From: Macrostomum lignano | Lineage: Eukaryota | Length of the DNA: 64,000 nucleotides | Reading direction: 5' to 3' | NCBI GenBank assembly: GCA_002269645.1 | Contig: NIVC01002491.1 | Location: forward strand, 62,001 to 126,000 | Shown here: in pieces, positions 5,019-62,060 of the stretch | Position numbering within the stretch: position 1 is the stretch's first letter | How the letters are laid out: every line of letters begins with the position of its first letter | Translations under genes and position numbers: made by a program | Notes under the pieces: generated by a model | The model's database searches: none | What the model saw: the letters and a program-made list of their open reading frames with translations, nothing else | What the model was told of the DNA's origin: nothing

Positions 5019-7845
5019 CATACTTGCAACATGCATTCTAATAATAGATCACCAATGGCCGGAAACCCATACTTGCAACATGCGTTCTAATAATAGATCA
5101 CCAATGGCCGGAAACCCATACTTGCAACATGCATTCTAATAATAGATCACCAATGGCCGGAAACCCATACTTGCAACATGCGTTCTAATAATAGATCACC
5201 AATGGCCGGAAACCCATACTTGCAACATGCATTCTAATAATAGATCACCAATGGCCGGAAACCCATACTTGCAACATGCGTTCTAATAATAGATCACCAA
5301 TGGCCGGAAACCCATACTTGCAACATGCATTCTAATAATAGATCACCAATGGCCGGAAACCCATACTTGCAACATGCATTCTAATAATAGATCACCAATG
5401 GCCGGAAACCCATACTTGCAACATGCATTCTAATAATAGATCACCAATGGCCGGAAACCCATACTTGCAACATGCATTCTAATAATAGATCACCAATGGC
5501 CGGAAACCCATACTTGCAACATGCATTCTAATAATAGATCACCAATGGCCGGAAACCCATACTTGCAACATGCATTCTAATAATAGATCACCAATGGCCG
5601 GAAACCCATACTTGCAACATGCATTCTAATAATAGATCACCAATGGCCGGAAACCCATACTTGCAACATGCATTCTAATAATAGATCACCAATGGCCGGA
5701 AACCCATACTTGCAACATGCGTTCTAATAATAGATCACCAATGGCCGGAAACCCATACTTGCAACATGCGTTCTAATAATAGATCACCAATGGCCGGAAA
5801 CCCATACTTGCAACATGCATTCTAATAATAGATCACCAATGGCCGGAAACCCATACTTGCAACATGCATTCTAATAATAGATCACCAATGGCCGGAAACC
5901 CATACTTGCAACATGCGTTCTAATAATAGATCACCAATGGCCGGAAACCCATACTTGCAACATGCATTCTAATAATAGATCACCAATGGCCGGAAACCCA
6001 TACTTGCAACATGCATTCTAATAATAGATCACCAATGGCCGGAAACCCATACTTGCAACATGCATTCTAATAATAGATCACCAATGGCCGGAAACCCATA
6101 CTTGCAACATGCATTCTAATAATAGATCACCAATGGCCGGAAACCCATACTTGCAACATGCGTTCTAATAATAGATCACCAATGGCCGGAAACCCATACT
6201 TGCAACATGCGTTCTAATAATAGATCACCAATGGCCGGAAACCCATACTTGCAACATGCATTCTAATAATAGATCACCAATGGCCGGAAACCCATACTTG
6301 CAACATGCATTCTAATAATAGATCACCAATGGCCGGAAACCCATACTTGCAACATGCGTTCTAATAATAGATCACCAATGGCCGGAAACCCATACTTGCA
6401 ACATGCATTCTAATAATAGATCACCAATGGCCGGAAACCCATACTTGCAACATGCATTCTAATAATAGATCACCAATGGCCGGAAACCCATACTTGCAAC
6501 ATGCATTCTAATAATAGATCACCAATGGCCGGAAACCCATACTTGCAACATGCATTCTAATAATAGATCACCAATGGCCGGAAACCCATACTTGCAACAT
6601 GCGTTCTAATAATAGATCACCAATGGCCGGAAACCCATACTTGCAACATGCGTTCTAATAATAGATCACCAATGGCCGGAAACCCATACTTGCAACATGC
6701 ATTCTAATAATAGATCACCAATGGCCGGAAACCCATACTTGCAACATGCGTTCTAATAATAGATCACCAATGGCCGGAAACCCATACTTGCAACATGCAT
6801 TCTAATAATAGATCACCAATGGCCGGAAACCCATACTTGCAACATGCGTTCTAATAATAGATCACCAATGGCCGGAAACCCATACTTGCAACATGCATTC
6901 TAATAATAGATCACCAATGGCCGGAAACCCATACTTGCAACATGCATTCTAATAATAGATCACCAATGGCCGGAAACCCATACTTGCAACATGCATTCTA
7001 ATAATAGATCACCAATGGCCGGAAACCCATACTTGCAACATGCGTTCTAATAATAGATCACCAATGGCCGGAAACCCATACTTGCAACATGCATTCTAAT
7101 AATAGATCACCAATGGCCGGAAACCCATACTTGCAACATGCGTTCTAATAATAGATCACCAATGGCCGGAAACCCATACTTGCAACATGCATTCTAATAA
7201 TAGATCACCAATGGCCGGAAACCCATACTTGCAACATGCATTCTAATAATAGATCACCAATGGCCGGAAACCCATACTTGCAACATGCATTCTAATAATA
7301 GATCACCAATGGCCGGAAACCCATACTTGCAACATGCATTCTAATAATAGATCACCAATGGCCGGAAACCCATACTTGCAACATGCGTTCTAATAATAGA
7401 TCACCAATGGCCGGAAACCCATACTTGCAACATGCGTTCTAATAATAGATCACCAATGGCCGGAAACCCATACTTGCAACATGCATTCTAATAATAGATC
7501 ACCAATGGCCGGAAACCCATACTTGCAACATGCGTTCTAATAATAGATCACCAATGGCCGGAAACCCATACTTGCAACATGCATTCTAATAATAGATCAC
7601 CAATGGCCGGAAACCCATACTTGCAACATGCATTCTAATAATAGATCACCATTGGCCGGAAACCCATACTTGCAACATGCATTCTAATAATAGATCAACA
7701 ATGGCCGGAAACCCATACTTGCAACATGCATTCTAATAATAGATCACCAATGGCCGGAAACCCATACTTGCAACATGCATTCTAATAATAGATCACCAAT
7801 GGCCGGAAACCCATACTTGCAACATGCATTCTAATAATAGATCAC
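5019..7845. repeat. 49-bp tandem array (catacttgcaacatgc[a/g]ttctaataatagatcaccaatggccggaaacc), about 58 copies, followed by degenerate related units to about 8012
   Basis: Near-identical units with no spacers; essentially one recurrent A/G variant position. Confidence 0.97.
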
Positions 7846-12002: not shown

Positions 12003-13510
12003 TTGGCTGGGATGGAGTGGAATTGGGAATCTGGGATGGAGTTGGGCTGGGAATCTGGGATGGAGTTGGACTGGGAATCTGGGATGGAGTTGAATTGGGA
12101 ATCTGGGATAGAGTGGGACTGGGAATCTGGGATGGAGTGGACTGGGAATCTGGGATGGAGTTGAATTGGGAATCTGGGATAGAGTGGGACTGGGAATCTG
12201 GGATGGAGTGGAATTGGGAATCTGGGATGGAGTGGGACTGGGAATCTGGGATGGAGTTGGACTGGGAATCTGGGATGGAGTGGAATTGGGAATCTGGGAT
12301 AGAGTGGGACTGGGAATCTGGGATGGAGTGGAATTGGGAATCTGGGATGGAGTGGGACTGGGAATCTGGGATGGAGTGGGACTGGGAATCTGGGATGGAG
12401 TGGGACTGGGAATCTGGGATGGAGTGGGACTGGGAATCTGGGATAGAGTGGGACTGGGAATCTGGGATAGAGTGGGACTGGGAATCTGGGATAGAGTTGG
12501 ACTGGGAATCTGGGATGGAGTTGGGCTGGGAATCTGGGATGGAGTGGAATTGGGAATCTGGGATGGAGTGGGACTGGGAATCTGGGATGGAGTGGAACTG
12601 GGAATCTGGGATGGAGTGGGACTGGGAATCTGGGATGGAGTGGGACTGGGAATCTGGGATGGAGTGGGACTGGGAATCTGGGATGGAGTAGGACTGGGAA
12701 TCTGGGATGGAGTTGGACTGGAAATCTGGGATGGAGTGGAATTGGGAATCTGGGATAGAGTGGGACTGGGAATCTGGGATGGAGTGGAATTGGGAATCTG
12801 GGATGGAGTGGGACTGGGAATCTGGGATGGAGTGGGACTGGGAATCTGGGATGGAGTGGGACTGGGAATCTGGGATGGAGTTGGACTGGGAATCTGGGAT
12901 GGAGTGGAATTGGGAATCTGGGATGGAGTGGGACTGGGAATCTGGGATGGAGTTGAACTGGGAATCTGGGATGGAGTTGGGCTGGGAATCTGGGATGGAG
13001 TGGGACTGGGAATCTGGGATGGAGTGGGACTGGGAATCTGGGATGGAGTAGAATTGGGAATCTGGGATGGAGTGGGACTGGGAATCTGGGATGGAGTGGA
13101 ATTGGGAATCTGGGATGGAGTGGGACTGGGAATCTGGGATGGAGTGGGACTGGGAATCTGAGATGGAGTTGGACTGGGAATCTGGGATGGAGTTGGACTG
13201 GGAATCTGGGATGGAGTGGGACTGGGAATCTGGGATGGAGTGGGACTGGGAATCTGGGATAGAGTGGGACTGGGAATCTGGGATGGAGTGGGACTGGGAA
13301 TCTGGAATGGAGTTGGACTGGGAATCTGGGATGGAGTGGAACTGGGAATCTGGGATGGAGTGGAATTGGGAATCTGGGATGGAGTGGGACTGGGAATCTG
13401 AGATGGAGTTGGACTGGGAATCTGGGATGGAGTGGGACTGGGAATCTGGGATGGAGTGGGACTGGGAATCTGGGATGGAGTTGGACTGGGAATCAGGGAT
13501 GGAGTGGAAC
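12003..13510. repeat. 24-bp G-rich minisatellite (tgggatggagtgggactgggaatc), about 62 copies
   Basis: Direct periodicity; source of the [16 protein letters not shown] and WESGME ORFs. Confidence 0.96.
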
Positions 13511-13829
13511 TGGGATGGGTTGGCAGGGGTAGGTGCCAACGGTGATAAAATAAAGAACAGTTCGTTAAAAGCGGTTTTTTATCTAACCACGCCGCAGTGT
13601 TGTTATCTGTCGCAGGAAAACTAATCTATAGCAATCGAGCAGTGCAGGTTGGCAGCCCGGATCAAATGGAATTTACTGGCACGCCTCGAACACGCGATAG
13701 CGGCGGCGAAGATATGCTCGGCATAAACAGCTCTGGTTAATAATTTATAACATTCTCATAGGGGCTTTGATTCTTTTTCTGACAGATCTCAACCCAAGCA
13801 TAGTCTAGTGGCCACCTGCAGTATACCAT

Positions 13830-18909: not shown

Positions 18910-19295
18910 AGATCGCAGCGCTTACTTCGACAAAAAACTCGATTGTGCTACTTACTATTTGAGTAGTTTGTGAAAGAAATCCGACGTATATAATTATGAC
19001 CGTGCGATTCTTATAAGTTAAATATTAAATTCCTAAGTTCTGATTGAAGTTCTTTTCAACTCGTTCTTCATTTGCAGATCTCCAAAATGAATCATACTTG
19101 AGTGACTTCACGTCAAACTCAATAAAACTTTCTCTTCTTATTTTTCGAGCAAAGTTAGTATAGTATCCGCCACCAGTTTTATCCGATATGTATCGAAAAT
19201 TCATGTTTCAGCTTGTAATATTTTACGGAATTTAACCCACTAAACGACGTGCAGTTCCCATGAGCCGATATGTATCGAAAGCTAGCAAAAGCCGC

Positions 19296-19511
19296 TTAGG
19301 CTTTGCACAGCTCCCTGGAGATGTCAGACGCTGACGCTGGGCAGCCGATGGCGGCGCAGGCGTCGCGAACGCAGCCGACGCAGTCTTCGGCGTCGGGCAG
19401 CCGATTGCGGCACTGCATCAGGGCGTCGCTGAGATTGCTGCCGTTTGCGGTGGCAGCCAGGAAGCTCAGCAGAAGCAGCAGCATCAGCGAGAACTGCAGC
19501 TTATTTGACAT
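19296..19511 (-). CDS. Small secreted cysteine-rich peptide, family unrecognised (71 aa; about 24-aa signal peptide; 6 Cys)
   Basis: MSNKLQFSLMLLLLLSFLAATANG then SNLSDALMQCRNRLPDAEDCVGCVRDACAAIGCPASASDISRELCKA*; GC-rich island in AT-rich flanks; A at -3 of the ATG. Confidence 0.72.
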   Translation of the reverse strand: MSNKLQFSLMLLLLLSFLAATANGSNLSDALMQCRNRLPDAEDCVGCVRDACAAIGCPASASDISRELCKA

Positions 19512-19729
19512 TGTTGCAGATGAATTCGCTGCATGCGGGGTGGTCAGTACGGACATCCATGAATTCCTTAGGTTAGAAATATTCAATTCAATTCATATTC
19601 AAACTACTGTTGTTTCTCTAGTTAAGCATATCGCAGGCGCACAACAGTCTAAATTTGTTTAACTCTAAGTTTTGTTCATTTTAGCTTTATCGTAGCTATA
19701 GATCAGTTCAACCTTCATGTAGCCTCCAG

Positions 19730-21875: not shown

Positions 21876-22007
21876 TCAACAGTGCCCAGGACCTTCGATC
21901 TGCAGTCGGCGCAGCCTCTGAGCCTCATCCCAGATCATCTCTCTCAGCTTCTCTTTTGGTAGGTCGTCCAGCTCTTGCTCGAATGTGAATGGCTCAGTGG
22001 CCACCGG
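21876..22007 (-). CDS. MAPK1: ERK/MAPK exon 6 (last)
   Basis: PVATEPFTFEQELDDLPKEKLREMIWDE matches the ERK L16 segment; ctgcAG acceptor; TGA ends at 21876. Confidence 0.93.
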   Translation of the reverse strand, partial: PVATEPFTFEQELDDLPKEKLREMIWDEAQRLRRLQIEGPGHC

Positions 22008-22057
22008 CTGCAGTGTAGGATGCGAGCGCTTTAGCTTAATCCGGGTATGCGATGCAC

Positions 22058-23230
22058 TTGCTTCAGGGACCGCTGATTCTCCCCGCCCACTTGCTTCAGG
22101 GACCGCTGATTCTCCCCGCCCACTTGCTTCAGGGACCGCTGATTCTCCCCGCCCACTTGCTTCAGGGACCGCTGATTCTCCCCGCCCACTTGCTTCAGGG
22201 ACCGCTGATTCTCCCCGCCCAGTTGCTTCAGGGACCGCTGATTCTCCCCGCCCACTTGCTTCAGGGACCGCTGATTCTCCCCGCCCAGTTAGTTGCTTCA
22301 GGGACCGCTGATTCTCCCCGCTTAGTTAGTTGCTTCAGGGACCGCTGATTCTCCCCGCCCACTTGCTTCAGGGACCGCTGATTCTCCCCGCCCACTTAGT
22401 TGCTTCAGGGACCGCTGATTCTCCCGCCCACTTGCTTCAGGGACCGCTGATTCTCCCCGCTTAGTTAGTTGCTTCAGGGACCGCTGATTCTCCCCGTCCA
22501 CTTGCTTCAGGGACCGCTGATTCTCCCCGACCACTTGCTTCAGGGACCACTGATTCTCCCCGCTTAGTTAGTTGCTTCAGGGACCGCTGATTCTCCCCGC
22601 CCACTTGCTTCAGGGACCGCTGATTCTCCCCGCCCACTTGCTTCAGGGACCGCTGATTCTCCCCGCCCACTTGCTTCAGGGACCGCTGATTCTCCCCGCC
22701 CAGTTGCTTCAGGGACCGCTGATTCTCCCCGCCCAGTTGCTTCAGGGACCGCTGATTCTCCCGCCCACTTGCTTCAGGGACCGCTGATTCTCCCGCCCAC
22801 TTGCTTCAGGGACCGCTGATTCTCCCGCCCACTTGCTTCAGGGACCGCTGATTCTCCCCGCTTAGTTAGTTGCTTCAGGGACCGCTGATTCTCCCCGCTT
22901 AGTTAGTTGCTTCAGGGACCGCTGATTCTCCCCGCCCACTTGCTTCAGGGACCGCTGATTCTCCCCGCCCACTTGCTTCAGGGACCGCTGATTCTCCCCG
23001 CCCAGTTGCTTCAGGGACCGCTGATTCTCCCCGCCCAGTTGCTTCAGGGACCGCTGATTCTCCCGCCCACTTGCTTCAGGGACCGCTGATTCTCCCCGCC
23101 CACTTGCTTCAGGGACCGCTGATTCTCCCCGCCCACTTGCTTCAGGGACCGCTGATTCTCCCCGACCAGTTAGTTGCTCCAGGGACCACCGATTCTCCCC
23201 GACCAGTTGCCCAGGGACCATCGATTCTTC
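22058..23230. repeat. 33-bp minisatellite (cttgcttcagggaccgctgattctccccgccca), ERK intron 5
   Basis: Direct periodicity. Confidence 0.95.
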
Positions 23231-23789
23231 CCGACCAGTTGCTCCAGGGACACTGGCTAATCCCTCTGTCAGTTACTTCAGGACTTTTAGGGTCACTCTA
23301 ACTGTAAATAAAAATATAGTCACACGACATTATCAGTACTAAAGTACATGTAGGAAGCACTAAACACTGTCAATGATAAGCATAAAAAATCACAGACAGG
23401 AAAGAATAGGAAAACAGAGATTTATGCTTCCATCCCAACACAGAACAATGGGTGGGATAAATAATCTAGCGCGCCATGACCCGATTGCTTTGTCACTGAC
23501 AGACTGCAGCTCAGACGAAGGCCTGAGCAGTCTGTGCCCGAGCTGCTTTCGCACCGCCAAAGCCACCGCTATGATCAGCCAAGATTTTGCAGAGCTAGTC
23601 GACAGCGGCAAAATAATGTCTGACGGTACAAAAGCAGCAATAGGCGATTTCATGCAATCTTAAGGGGCGCGCAGTTGCCAAGCTAACTAATGCTGTTATT
23701 GAACTGACAGAGTCGCTTTAGTGATTTACTTAATGATAGGGGTTCACTAAGATTACTCAATGGATAGGAATTCACAGTTAATTAGTGGG

Positions 23790-24445
23790 AAATTTCTCAC
23801 TTGATGAGGGAATTTCGCATGGAATAACGGGGAATGTCTTTCGTAATAAAAGCGGCAATTTTCATTCAATCAAGGGGGAACTTCTTTCTCAATCAAGGGG
23901 GATTTTCTCACTCAATCAAGGGGGATTTCTCTCTCAATCAAGGAAAAATTTTTTAATCAAGCAAGAGGGATTTTCTCACTTAATCAAAAGGAACTTTTCA
24001 ATAAATTAAGGAGGAATTTCTCACTCAATCAAGGGGGATTTCTCACTCAATCAAGGGGGAATTTCTTACTCAATCAAGGGGGAATTTCTTACTCAATCAA
24101 GGGGGAATTTCTCACTCAATCAAGGGGGAATTTCTTACTCAATCAAGGGGGAATTTCTTACTCAATCAAGGGGGAATTTCTTACTCAATCAAGGGGGATT
24201 TCTCACTCAATCAAGGGGGAATTTCTTACTCAATCAAGGGGGAATTTCTCACTCAATCAAGGGGGAATTTCTTACTCAATCAAGGGGGAATTTCTCACTT
24301 AATCAAGAGGGATTTCTCAACGACTTAAAGAGGAATTTTTCAATCAATCAAGGGGGAATCTTTAATCAATCAAGGGGGAAATTTTGACTTAATCAAAGGG
24401 GGAATTTCTCCCTCAATTAAGGGGGATTTCTCTCTCAATCATGGG
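23790..24445. repeat. About 24-bp minisatellite (ggaatttctcactcaatcaagggg), ERK intron 5
   Basis: Homogeneous core at 24010-24300 with degenerate flanks. Confidence 0.9.
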
Positions 24446-24622
24446 GGAGGACTTGTCAAAGGAGGACTTTGTTACTTTACTAATAGGGAATATCTACGAT
24501 GAGAAATTCCCTTTCTCATAGTTTAGGGGACTGGGGACTGCGTGTTGGTAGACATAGGGGAATCTCTGAAGCCTTAATAGTACTACACAAAAGTTAGGTA
24601 AATTCCAAAAGAAACAACTGAC

Positions 24623-25096
24623 CTCATCCTGCGGGTCGTAGTACTGCTCCAGGTACGGGTGACTCAGGGCGGCCTCAACGGTGATCCGCCGCTCCGGATT
24701 AAACGTGAGCAGCCGTTCCAACAGGTCCAAAGCTTTGGGGTCAGCATTGGGATAAACTTGCGCCCAAGTCTTCTTAGTTTTCACTGGCAATTGTAGCAGG
24801 TAATTTCTGGCCTTATCGTTGCGAATACAGCTCAGGTCTTCGCTGCTAGGACTGCCCAGCACATTCAGGATGAGGTTCAGCTGATCGATGTAGTGCTTGC
24901 CCGGAAACAGCGGCTTGTTGTTCAGCATCTCTGCCAGGATGCAGCCAACTGACCAGATGTCGATGCTCTTGGTGTAGCCCTTGCTGTTCAGCATGATCTC
25001 TGGGGCCCGGTACCAGCGGGTGGCCACGTACTCTGTCAGGATGCCCGTGTGATCGTGCTCGGGGTCCGCCACGCGGGCCAGACCGAAGTCGCAGAT
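24623..25096 (-). CDS. MAPK1: ERK/MAPK exon 5
   Basis: [52 protein letters not shown]...YYDPQDE; TEY activation loop; ccAG acceptor, GTcagt donor. Confidence 0.97.
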
Positions 25097-25099
25097 CTG

Positions 25100-25560
25100 G
25101 AGGAGGAGAGGAAGAGAAGGAGAGGGAGGTGAAATGGAGGAGAGATAGAGTTGATAAGGTGCGATAGAGCGAAGAGAGAAGTAGAGTAGTGAAGAGAGAA
25201 ATAAAGTTGAATTAGAGAAGTAGGAAGAGGTAGAGTGTAGACAGAGGTAGAGTGTAGACAGAGGTAGAGTGGAGGAGGGGAATGCAGTGGAGGGAAAGGT
25301 AGAGTAGAGAAGGCGAGATAGAGTGAGAGGAGAGTAGAGTAGAGTATAGAAGGGCGATGTAGAGTAGAGAAGGGACAGGTAGAGTAGAGAAGGGACAGGT
25401 AGAGTAGGGAAGGGACAGGTAGAGTAGGGAAGGGACAGGTAGAGTAGAGAAGGGACAGGTAGAGTAGAGAAGGGACAGGTAGAGTAGGGAAGGGACAGGT
25501 AGAGTAGGGAAGGGAGAGGTAGAGAGTAGAGAATAATGCTCAATGAGAATAGAGTGAGAA
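25100..25560. repeat. Purine-rich low-complexity tract with a 20-bp repeat (agagtagagaagggacaggt), ERK intron 4
   Basis: Strong strand asymmetry; abuts the exon 5 acceptor as an extended pyrimidine tract. Confidence 0.85.
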
Positions 25561-26044
25561 GAGAATACAAAAACTATATGCACTAAACACAGGTGCCAAT
25601 AATTAAAGTTAGAACAAACAGTTAGCAAAATGTACGGGGCGACAGGCCAGTTGCTCAAAAACTGCCACAAATACGTCACACACACTGGCTAAGCAAGTTC
25701 CGAGCAACATAATAGAGAATAACAGGCTGTCAGAGCCTCGCAGCATACTGTAGCAAGCCATGACCCGACTGCCAGCCACTGTTGTTAGGCCAAATAAATA
25801 TAGGTAAACGGCTCCAGGTGCGTCTGGCCGCTCTCTGCGCTGAACTGCCGCCACAGCGAGCAAAAAACGGACACAGGTAAATAAGAAGTGTGTCTGCTAG
25901 CTGGGCACTGGGCGGCAGTAGCTGTGTGCAAGCATTTGTCAGCGCGGAAAGCAGACACCCCGACTGGCTGGCAATCTTAAGGGGCTTGCATCAAGATATA
26001 TATCACCAGAGTAATATAAACCGATTAGGCTTTTAACTTAATTA

Positions 26045-26164
<120 letters not shown>

Positions 26165-26169
26165 TTAGA

Positions 26170-26620
26170 TGGTTGAGGGGATGCTAAGAGGATGGGGTTT
26201 CTGAGTGAATGGGGGGTTGCTGAGGTGATGGGGGTTGCTGAGGGGATGGGGGTTGCTGAGGGGATGGAGTTGCTGAGGGGATGGGGGTTGCTGAGGTGAT
26301 AGGGGTTGCTGAGTGGATGGAGTTGCTGAGGGGATGGGGGTTGATGAGGGGATGGGGGGTTGCTGAGGGGATGGGGTTGCTGAGTGGATGGGGGTTGCTG
26401 AGGGGATGGCAGTTGCTGAGGGGATGGGGGTTGCTGAGGTGATGGGGGTTGCTGAGGGGATGGGGGTTGATGAGGGGATGGGGGTTGCTGAGGGGATGGG
26501 GGTTGCTGAGTGGATGGGGGTTGCTGAGGGGATGGCAGTTGCTGAGTGGATTGGAGTTGCTGAGGGGATGGGGGTTGCTGAGGGGATGGGGGTTGCTGAG
26601 GGGATTGGAGTTGCTGAGTG
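26170..26620. repeat. 18/19-bp G-rich minisatellite (gaggggatgggggttgct), ERK intron 3
   Basis: Direct periodicity. Confidence 0.92.
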
Positions 26621-26755
26621 AATCAGGATTGTTAGACGAATCCAAGGATCATCTGAAAGCCCACAAAATTGACAGAAACTGAGCTACAGAATGGCCAACC
26701 AGGTTTGACATTAAATATCAGGATGCAAAGTAAGATTTGTTGCCAATCAACCTAC

Positions 26756-26915
26756 CGCGCAGGATCTGGTAAAGAAAATAGCAGACATGCTCGTTGCTAA
26801 GATTCTGCGTCTTCAGCAGTTTGAACATGTCCGTCTCCATCAGGCACTGGACTATGTATACGTCGCGCATTGCGTCAACAGACGATGCGGTGATGATATC
26901 ACGGATATCAATAAT
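26756..26915 (-). CDS. MAPK1: ERK/MAPK exon 3
   Basis: IIDIRDII...[36 protein letters not shown]; canonical splice sites, phase-consistent. Confidence 0.95.
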
Positions 26916-27082
26916 CTGCGGGATGAAGCATTGTGGGGATCTTGATCGACTGCACGAAATACTCCCGAATATCTTGGCATCTGACTGGATTATAACCTGA
27001 TCACCTTGATCCAGAGTCAAACTAATCCCTGAATTTTTATGGGGATCGATTTTCTCCATAAAAGTACAGCAAGGCGACTCAC

Positions 27083-27209
27083 ATTTTCGTGCCTAAACCG
27101 AGTAAGAATTTTGATCTCGCGCAGGGTCCGCTGGCAGTAAGTCTGGTACTCGAATGGCGAAATCTTTTTGATGGCCACCCTATCGCCAATCATGTTGTCA
27201 TTGGCAGAT
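27083..27209 (-). CDS. MAPK1: ERK/MAPK exon 2
   Basis: [33 protein letters not shown]; ttAG acceptor, GTGAGT donor. Confidence 0.95.
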
Positions 27210-59467: not shown

Positions 59468-61254
59468 TTGAGTCTGATGCTTGTGAACTGGTTTGAGATG
59501 TGAGTCTGATGCTTGTGAACTGGTTTGAGATGTGAGTCTGATGCTTGTGAACTGGTTTGAGATGTGAGTCTGATGCTTGTGAACTGGTTTGAGATGTGAG
59601 TCTGATGCTTGTGAACTGGTTTGAGATGTGAGTCTAATGCTTGTGAACTGGTTTGAGATGTGAGTCTGATGCTTGTGAACTGGTTTGAGATGTGAGTCTG
59701 ATGCTTGTGAACTGGTTTGAGATGTGAGTCTAATGCTTGTGAACTGGTTTGAGATGTGAGTCTGATGCTTGTGAACTGGTTTGAGATGTGAGTCTGATGC
59801 TTGTGAACTGGTTTGAGATGTGAGTCTGATGCTTGTGAACTGGTTTGAGATGTGAGTCTGATGCTTGTGAACTGGTTTGAGATGTGAGTCTGATGCTTGT
59901 GAACTGGTTTGAGATGTGAGTCTGATGCTTTTGAACTGGTTTGAGATGTGAGTCTGATGCTTGTGAACTGGTTTGAGATGTGAGTCTGATGCTTGTGAAC
60001 TGGTTTGAGATGTGAGTCTGATGCTTGTGAACTGGTTTGAGATGTGAGTCTGATGCTTGTGAACTGGTTTGAGATGTGAGTCTGATGCTTGTGAACTGGT
60101 TTGAGATGTGAGTCTGATGCTTGTGAACTGGTTTGAGATGTGAGTCTGATGCTTGTGAACTGGTTTGAGATGTGAGTCTGATGCTTGTGAACTGGTTTGA
60201 GATGTGAGTCTGATGCTTTTGAACAGGTTTGAGATGTGAGTCTGATGCTTGTGAACTGGTTTGAGATGTGAGTCTGATGCTTGTGAACTGGTTTGAGATG
60301 TGAGTCTGATGCTTGTGAACTGGTTTGAGATGTGAGTCTGATGCTTGTGAACTGGTTTGAGATGTGAGTCTGATGCTTGTGAACTGGTTTGAGATGTGAG
60401 TCTGATGCTTTTGAACTGGTTTGAGATGTGAGTCTGATGCTTGTGAACTGGTTTGAGATGTGAGTCTGATGCTTGTGAACTGGTTTGAGATGTGAGTCTG
60501 ATGCTTGTGAACTGGTTTGAGATGTGAGTCTGATGCTTGTGAACTGGTTTGAGATGTGAGTCTGATGCTTGTGAACTGGTTTGAGATGTGAGTCTGATGC
60601 TTGTGAACTGGTTTGAGATGTGAGTCTGATGCTTGTGAACTGGTTTGAGATGTGAGTCTGATGCTTGTGAACTGGTTTGAGATGTGAGTCTGATGCTTGT
60701 GAACTGGTTTGAGATGTGAGTCTGATGCTTTTGAACAGGTTTGAGATGTGAGTCTGATGCTTGTGAACTGGTTTGAGATGTGAGTCTGATGCTTGTGAAC
60801 TGGTTTGAGATGTGAGTCTGATGCTTGTGAACTGGTTTGAGATGTGAGTCTGATGCTTGTGAACTGGTTTGAGATGTGAGTCTGATGCTTGTGAACTGGT
60901 TTGAGATGTGAGTCTGATGCTTGTGAACTGGTTTGAGATGTGAGTCTGATGCTTGTGAACTGGTTTGAGATGTGAGTCTGATGCTTGTGAACTGGTTTGA
61001 GATGTGAGTCTGATGCTTGTGAACTGGTTTGAGATGTGAGTCTGATGCTTGTGAACTGGTTTGAGATGTGAGTCTGATGCTTGTGAACTGGTTTGAGATG
61101 TGAGTCTGATGCTTGTGAACTGGTTTGAGATGTGAGTCTGATGCTTGTGAACTGGTTTGAGATGTGAGTCTGATGCTTGTGAACTGGTTTGAGATGTGAG
61201 TCTGATGCTTGTGAACTGGTTTGAGATGTGAGTCTGATGCTTGTGAACTGGTTT
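59468..61254. repeat. 32-bp near-perfect minisatellite (tgagtctgatgcttgtgaactggtttgagatg), about 56 copies
   Basis: Direct periodicity; source of the 656-aa repeat ORF. Confidence 0.97.
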
Positions 61255-61699: not shown

Positions 61700-62060
61700 T
61701 GATATGAGACTGATGAGATGTGAGACTGATGAGATTTGAGACTGATGAGATGTGAGACTGATGAGATACCGTATGAGACTGATGAGATGTGAGACTGATG
61801 AGATTTGAGACTGATGAGATATGAGACTGATGAGATATGAGACTGATGAGATATGAGACTGATGAGATATGAGACTGATGAGATGTGATATAGATGAGAT
61901 GTGAGACTGATGAGATATGAGACTGATGAGATGTGATACAGATGAGATGTGAGACTGATGAGATATGAGGCTGATGAGATGTGATACTGATGAGATATGA
62001 GACTGATGAGATGTGAGACTAATTAAGTATGAGAGTGATGATATATGAGATTATGAGATG
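61700..62060. repeat. 16-bp minisatellite (gagactgatgagat[a/g]t)
   Basis: Direct periodicity. Confidence 0.9.

Follow-up and report, generated by a model that had tools for sequence, protein, structure and literature searches.

A probable lineage-restricted gene for a small secreted six-cysteine peptide in Macrostomum lignano

Results

Regeneration, bioadhesion and sexual conflict in hermaphrodites are studied in the model Macrostomum lignano, in which many secreted proteins related to reproduction are orphans that evolve fast. Here we describe the gene of one small peptide of this organism, located in a stretch of 64,000 nucleotides (nt) of contig NIVC01002491.1 (assembly GCA_002269645.1, Mlig_3_7, positions 62,001 to 126,000, forward strand). 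The whole stretch is called the window below, and all positions are counted from its first letter. The open reading frame (ORF) of the peptide lies on the minus strand, downstream of a MAPK gene on the same strand and convergent with an EAAT-type gene. We consider it probable that this is a genuine lineage-restricted gene. Its product would be a small mini-protein of three helices, secreted and stapled by disulfides, which works outside the cell as an intact folded peptide. The features that carry this reading are the following.

19296..19511, minus strand: coding sequence (CDS) of the peptide precursor, 71 codons plus TAA in a single exon, identical to the GenBank hypothetical protein of contig NIVC01002491.1.
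19440..19511, minus strand: predicted signal peptide (rule-based), residues 1-24, with n-region MSNK, h-region LQFSLMLLLLLSFLAA and c-region TANG.
19299..19439, minus strand: mature peptide of 47 amino acids (aa) with six cysteines, isoelectric point (pI) 4.6, an N-x-S sequon at N26 and a predicted three-helix bundle.

The frame and its TAA stop fill 19296-19511 exactly and translate as MSNKLQFSLMLLLLLSFLAATANGSNLSDALMQCRNRLPDAEDCVGCVRDACAAIGCPASASDISRELCKA. A preliminary description of the window had placed a 71-aa ORF here with the cysteine spacing C-x9-C-x2-C-x4-C-x4-C-x11-C. Translation reproduces coordinates, length and spacing alike, the cysteines being residues 34, 44, 47, 52, 57 and 69 of the precursor. 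Signal peptide and cleavage were judged by rules, namely charge, Kyte-Doolittle hydropathy and the (-3,-1) rule. The N-terminus has a single positive charge (K4) followed by an uncharged run from residue 5 to 28, and the hydrophobic core LMLLLLLSFL reaches a maximum 10-residue Kyte-Doolittle mean of 3.05. Two cleavage sites satisfy the (-3,-1) rule: A-N-G followed by S, after residue 24, which is the site proposed before, and A-T-A followed by N, after residue 22. The mature peptide has a mass of 4.9 kDa and is acidic, with a net charge of -2.6 at pH 7. Dibasic sites (KR, RR, KK or RK) are absent from the peptide sequence, the C-terminus (...ELCKA) offers no amidation signal, and N-x-S sequons are found at N23 and N26. 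With a signal peptide, a length below about 100 aa and an even number of at least four cysteines in its mature part, the precursor has the generic properties shared by small secreted cysteine-rich proteins, which are a descriptive class and not a homology family.

AlphaFold2, run on the mature 47-aa peptide as a single sequence, predicts three helices and no strand, with a mean predicted local distance difference test score (pLDDT) of 85.7 and a predicted template modelling score (pTM) of 0.63. The helices are moderately amphipathic and span mature residues 2-13, 17-31 and 37-46. In this numbering, helix 1 holds C10, helix 2 holds C20, C23 and C28, and helix 3 holds C45. In the model of the full precursor the same two C-terminal helices return, while the signal peptide is of low confidence and merges with helix 1. 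The prediction agrees with the three-disulfide, probably helical mini-protein that had been suggested from the sequence.

Several known families were considered and rejected. No Pfam family matches the peptide at E<=10. The beta-rich disulfide mini-domains (defensin/CS-alpha-beta, knottin, EGF and Kazal), which the preliminary description had also set aside, are excluded by the missing Pfam match and by a model of three helices and no strand. The neurohormones of the CHH/ITP and eclosion-hormone families lack a Pfam match as well, and the spacing 9-2-4-4-11 differs from their family spacings. Members of the insulin/relaxin superfamily have an A-chain with CC-x3-C-x8-C, a B-chain with C-x11-C and a C-peptide excised at dibasic sites; the peptide has no CC pair, no dibasic site and no match to the family. 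Twin Cx9C (CHCH) proteins do not fit either, as the peptide has one Cx9C, broken by a proline, and carries a signal peptide. A classical processed neuropeptide precursor is rejected for the absence of dibasic sites and of a C-terminal glycine amidation signal.

The composition of the frame sets it apart from its surroundings. The ORF has a guanine-cytosine (GC) content of 62.5% against about 36% in the flanks on both sides, and the edges of this GC island are the start and stop codons. GC at the three codon positions is 0.58/0.49/0.81 (chi-square p=2.6e-4), and the rank order is that of the neighbouring EAAT exons (0.65/0.44-0.48/0.68-0.70), which bears out the earlier remark on a GC-rich coding composition within AT-rich flanks. 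Codons are biased to C or G endings (CTG for 10 of 12 leucines, TGC for all six cysteines), and cysteine is enriched: the ORF has six, and shuffles that keep the codon-position composition have 1.9 on average (P=0.0016). The island is non-repetitive, lies outside tandem arrays and is single-copy in the 64-kb window. A transposon- or repeat-derived ORF was rejected on the same grounds; moreover, only three syntenic homeologues are on record, and transcripts overlapping repeats are left out of the GenBank gene set. Neither a known RNA family (best Rfam match E=0.86, with 18.6 bits where the gathering score is 71) nor exceptional RNA structure (folding z=-1.1) was found in the island.

The exact 71-aa protein is a called gene of GCA_002269645.1, entered in GenBank as a hypothetical protein and present in UniProt. 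The gene had been described as unrecognised and as one of a kind easily missed by annotation. This does not hold, since the protein had already been called; the gene is an annotated but uncharacterised hypothetical protein, not a missed one. The annotation in GenBank is a subset, called 'coregenes', of a genome-guided transcriptome made with StringTie and TACO together with a mapped de novo assembly (PMC5730564). Its pipeline comprised strand filtering, a threshold on reads per kilobase per million mapped reads (RPKM), CDS calls by TransDecoder and removal of non-coding and repeat-overlapping transcripts (PMC5730564). Because the gene model was built from transcripts, minus-strand RNA sequencing (RNA-seq) support for the peptide gene is implied. 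An absence of transcript evidence, named beforehand as an observation that would speak against the gene, is thus not what the annotation indicates (PMC5730564).

Two further copies of 71 aa are on record, PAA69794.1 (BOX15_Mlig034478g1), which differs from the window peptide by D43A, and PAA71805.1 (BOX15_Mlig025478g1), which differs by D43A and G46R. All three loci share one arrangement, with MAPK on the same strand, the peptide, and EAAT convergent to it, and the copies are homeologues of the neopolyploid genome, not dispersed paralogues. Their CDS differ by two nonsynonymous and two synonymous substitutions. The CDS is free of indels, whereas the flanks have several; about 1.4 indels would be expected in the CDS. 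Net charges of the homeologues are -1.6 and -0.6 compared to -2.6 for the window peptide. The two replacements, D43A (19383-19385) and G46R (19374-19376), flank or fall inside the CxxC pair and move the charge stepwise from -2.6 to -0.6; with four substitutions in all, this clustering is indistinguishable from chance. An older model of 4,130 aa, UniRef100_A0A1I8HRR7, is a chimera of MAPK, the peptide ORF (residues ~1297-1365) and antisense EAAT. As a result of this chimera, the 90% cluster of the peptide is represented by MAPK.

Searches for relatives were negative throughout. A word-index search of 5.8 billion clusters returned no relative, a result that is in part an artefact of the MAPK-represented cluster, as the search misses the peptide itself. 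Three matches at E<=1e-3 were obtained by phmmer against 1.84 billion representatives and all were rejected as spurious: they are translated proteins of tandem-repeat or low-complexity type, they lack the cysteine framework, and their scores are inflated by four to five repeated stretches. A sequence search of PDB gave nothing significant. Foldseek with the predicted model likewise gave nothing significant; its best matches were a de novo designed helical bundle in PDB (E=5) and an entry of BFVD at E=2.3. Searches for paralogues with a cysteine-pattern regular expression and tblastn, in the window and the three 20-kb loci, found the gene itself only. These negatives have limited power: at such library size E<=1e-3 corresponds to about 35 bits, which a 47-aa domain has to attain, the clustering of the protein collection hides the peptide under the representative MAPK, and the single demonstrable relative in the searched collection is distant (a contig of run SRR30276804, with 87.6% protein identity in MAPK). 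The earlier statement that the cysteine pattern is not recognisable as defensin, knottin, EGF or Kazal stands as far as Pfam and the all-alpha predicted fold go. A strong match to a described family or a transposon, named beforehand as an observation that would speak against the proposed reading, did not appear with Pfam, phmmer, PDB or Foldseek.

Further features were noted around the peptide gene and towards its neighbours.

19529..19549, minus strand: candidate 3' splice site (cis or spliced-leader (SL) trans), from the sequence; the chimeric UniRef model uses this junction.
19554..19556, minus strand: in-frame upstream ATG, 15 codons up and with no intervening stop, which would give 86 aa.
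19577..19583, minus strand: TATA-like AATATTT, about 66-72 nt upstream of the ATG, from the sequence; a speculative alternative to splicing for the 5' end.
19183..19280, minus strand: putative 3' untranslated region (3'UTR) segment in which a 16-nt quasi-palindromic motif occurs twice in identical form (19183-19198 and 19265-19280).
19137..19142, minus strand: AATAAG, 154 nt past the stop, the sole poly(A)-signal-like hexamer within ~480 nt downstream on the gene strand.
19121..19126, plus strand: AATAAA of the convergent EAAT gene.

The description of the gene as intronless holds for the CDS only. At 17 nt upstream of the ATG there is a good candidate splice acceptor, made up of the branch-point-like TACTGAC (19549-19543), a C-rich stretch and CAG, whose AG occupies 19530-19529, so that an exon would start at 19528. 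The candidate fits the cis-acceptor motif CAG, and it fits the trans-splice acceptor [T/C]TNCAG in part (PMC8629364). No record of the extended products of 86 aa (from the upstream ATG) or 96 aa (from a TTG) was found by exact look-up. Since the transcript-based CDS starts at 19511 and the 86-aa product is unrecorded, the 5' end of the mRNA probably lies downstream of the upstream ATG, between 19556-19554 and 19511.

On the other side, a plus-strand ORF at 18038-18463 matches Pfam SDF at 5.9e-32, which confirms the convergent EAAT-type neighbour, and the called SDF gene model of 539 aa stops 386 nt from the stop codon of the peptide. The EAAT AATAAA (plus strand, 19121-19126) and the AATAAG of the peptide gene (minus strand, 19142-19137) face each other within 22 nt. 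At their 3' ends the two genes probably either adjoin or share a few tens of nt, and such a convergent overlap may yield a short sense/antisense duplex. The 16-nt motif in the putative 3'UTR reads CCGATATGTATCGAAA on the plus strand and UUUCGAUACAUAUCGG on the gene strand. Its copies are 82 nt apart, with 0.05 matches expected by chance and no other occurrence in the window. All three homeologues retain the pair, with one substitution in one copy, and no significant RNA structure was found around the pair (z=+0.8).

The 2.4-kb interval between the peptide gene and the upstream MAPK gene holds minisatellites of 28 bp and 15 bp. A complementary DNA (cDNA) contig of a related species from the Logan assemblies, SRR30276804_36565, matches the MAPK gene of the window (21900-27208, minus strand) with 87.6% protein and about 81% nucleotide identity. 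It delineates five coding exons, 27208-27083, 26915-26755, 26133-26051, 25098-24615 and 22009-21900, and a minisatellite of 35 copies of 33 bp (22055-23251) lies inside the last intron. Around 39% of the window is minisatellite, in 34 distinct arrays with periods of 4-178 bp and up to 118 copies, for example at 5019-7845, 12007-13515, 22055-23251 and 59469-61254. Units are 98-99% identical in several arrays, a high GC content or a strong strand skew marks many, and the arrays explain most long spurious ORFs and many GC-rich islands of the window.

Discussion

Small secreted cysteine-rich proteins are a well-known kind, and orphans among them are common in M. lignano and other genomes. New here are the cysteine framework and the orphan family. 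From the sequence and the predicted fold, a path from precursor to product can be proposed. The N-terminal signal peptide would direct the nascent chain to the endoplasmic reticulum (ER), and cleavage after Gly24 or Ala22 would release an acidic mature peptide of about 4.9 kDa, for which N-glycosylation at N26 is possible. The mature peptide is predicted to fold into a three-helix mini-bundle that three disulfides would lock. Judging from helix geometry, the most plausible arrangement is that helices 1 and 3 are stapled through C10 and C45 to the CxxC pair C20/C23 in helix 2. C28-C33 would close the loop between helices 2 and 3. The product would then be exported as a protease-resistant extracellular mini-protein. 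As it is acidic and has neither dibasic sites nor an amidation signal, the peptide more probably acts intact than as a lytic or processed peptide. It is more probably an extracellular ligand or signal, or a component of a gland secretion, than a membrane-lytic cationic peptide or a processed neuropeptide. Among the functions that had been proposed for it, a role as pheromone or in seminal fluid is possible, an adhesive role has no support, and the antimicrobial candidate is less likely in view of the acidic mature peptide (pI 4.6, net charge -2.6).

The rival explanation that survives best, which we nevertheless regard as rather unlikely, is that the ORF is spurious. The region between MAPK and EAAT would be transcribed, as a long non-coding RNA (lncRNA), by read-through or as 3'-end antisense, and TransDecoder would have chosen a chance ORF of 71 codons from which no peptide is made. 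A number of observations weigh in this direction and against a genuine peptide gene. An open frame of this length is by itself unremarkable (with this composition, P~0.16). A high GC content does little on its own to show coding here because many GC-rich windows are tandem arrays: of 153 GC-rich windows of 216 nt, 58 lie mostly within such arrays, and the stretch as a whole is full of GC-rich non-coding repeats. On the gene strand a canonical AATAAA was not found within ~480 nt downstream of the stop. Transcript support follows from how the annotation was made and not from reads. No version of the peptide was found in the run-derived (Logan) assemblies, where coverage is thin. There is no literature or proteomic trace: the gene identifiers (IDs) and accessions are not mentioned in the full-text literature, and the supplements of PMC5816591, PMC5730564, PMC7336406 and PMC5977470 hold no match, although later papers use v3 transcriptome IDs, to which these may not carry over. 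The homeologues give no evidence of selection either. They are about 98% identical in the flanks too, with a CDS divergence of 0.9-1.4% against 0.5-5.3% in the flanks, and because the flanks are equally similar the intact ORF in all three is uninformative on selection. No homologue was found outside M. lignano in the searches made, and hence, as far as sequence comparison goes, no evidence of purifying selection. Finally, AlphaFold2 can be over-confident when it models an idealised helical peptide from a single sequence, and the pairing of the disulfides is read from helix geometry only. Against the chance ORF stands that the GC island matches the peptide ORF exactly, that the periodicity of GC along codon positions is significant and has the rank order of the host, and that the sequence is non-repetitive. 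Moreover, a strong signal peptide, cysteines that are even in number and significantly enriched, and a confident compact predicted fold come together in a single frame. We therefore keep to a genuine secreted-peptide gene as the probable reading.

Far less likely is a role in defence or predation as a secreted cationic antimicrobial peptide or pore-forming toxin. Being small, secreted, disulfide-rich and an orphan is typical of that class, and the helices are moderately amphipathic. However, a net positive charge, which defines the cationic class, is found neither in the window peptide (-2.6) nor in its homeologues (-1.6 and -0.6), and no similarity to an antimicrobial or toxin family was found in Pfam or PDB.

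The automatic name that UniProt gives to the homeologues A0A267F9B1 and A0A267FDG2, '4Fe-4S ferredoxin-type domain-containing protein', points to an iron-sulfur (Fe-S) protein, and EDCVGCVRDACAAIGCP locally resembles the cluster motif EDCVGCKRCETACP of PsaC in the PDB sequence search (E=1.3). Nevertheless, a 4Fe-4S ferredoxin-type protein is scarcely credible. Motif spacing, profile match, predicted fold and secretory targeting all speak against the label. The peptide string C-VG-C-VRDA-C-AAIG-CP has a 2-4-4 spacing instead of CxxCxxCxxxCP. No Fer4-type family (PROSITE PS51379 / Pfam Fer4) matches at E<=10, and the E-value of PsaC, the best Fe-S protein in PDB, is not significant. The fold is predicted as all-helical, whereas ferredoxins are alpha+beta, and an ER signal peptide is present, unlike in non-secretory ferredoxins; Fe-S assembly is cytosolic or organellar. 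Thus, the likeness is confined to a local CxxC...C...CP string, and the UniProt name is probably a misannotation. Equally remote is the idea that the overlapping plus-strand ORF (first ATG at 19321, end at 19662, 113 aa) is the true CDS and the minus-strand ORF its antisense shadow: the two share third-codon positions, so that a high third-position GC (GC3, 0.81-0.83) fits both and cannot choose the strand by itself, but the plus-strand ORF has less GC at the first than at the second position (0.49/0.59), opposite to the host exons, extends 150 nt past the GC island with a GC3 of 0.30 there, is S/A/R-rich low-complexity sequence without a Pfam match, and is not the one that the strand-filtered GenBank annotation calls.

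Several known systems resemble a secreted three-helix peptide of this kind. The water-borne pheromones of Euplotes (Er-1, Er-10) derive from precursors with a signal peptide and are acidic six-cysteine three-helix bundles of ~40-50 aa with three disulfides. They are the closest analogue in predicted build and in the possible action as an intact extracellular ligand. However, their cysteine spacing differs, the M. lignano precursor has no pro-segment and the phylum is a different one, so that the resemblance would at most be convergent; no Euplotes-type pheromone chain was among the matches at E<=10 of phmmer against PDB or of Foldseek. Eclosion hormone, the CHH/ITP family and Aplysia attractin are secreted helical three-disulfide peptides that are active intact and undergo no dibasic processing inside the folded domain. 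The likeness lies in secretion, helices and three disulfides, the last two being predicted for the peptide described here. Yet these hormones have 58-75 aa compared to 47 aa and other cysteine spacings, no Pfam match links them to the peptide, and their families are conserved across phyla while the peptide is without a detectable relative. Within M. lignano itself, the prostate-limited transcripts, which encode putative seminal-fluid proteins, are a set in which a signal peptide is present in 38 of 65 and a BLAST hit is missing for 31 of 76 (Weber et al., 2018, PMC5977470). They come from the same organism, and many of their products bear a signal peptide and lack a BLAST hit. No sequence or ID of the supplements matches the peptide and nothing ties the gene to this set.

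It is tempting, although improbable, to go further and to see in the peptide the founding member of an undescribed three-helix, three-disulfide secreted fold, a water- or ejaculate-borne signal (pheromone or allohormone) of an outcrossing hermaphrodite, convergent on the Euplotes pheromones and maybe of recent, possibly de novo, origin in Macrostomum. At a more practical level, the chimeric older gene model distorts the clustering of the peptide in large sequence collections. An orphan peptide of 4.9 kDa that is predicted to fold confidently is also tractable, being accessible to chemical synthesis, RNA interference (RNAi) by soaking and in situ hybridisation. If the peptide is indeed a signal, or a component of the ejaculate or of a gland secretion, the helical mini-proteins would gain a new cysteine framework.

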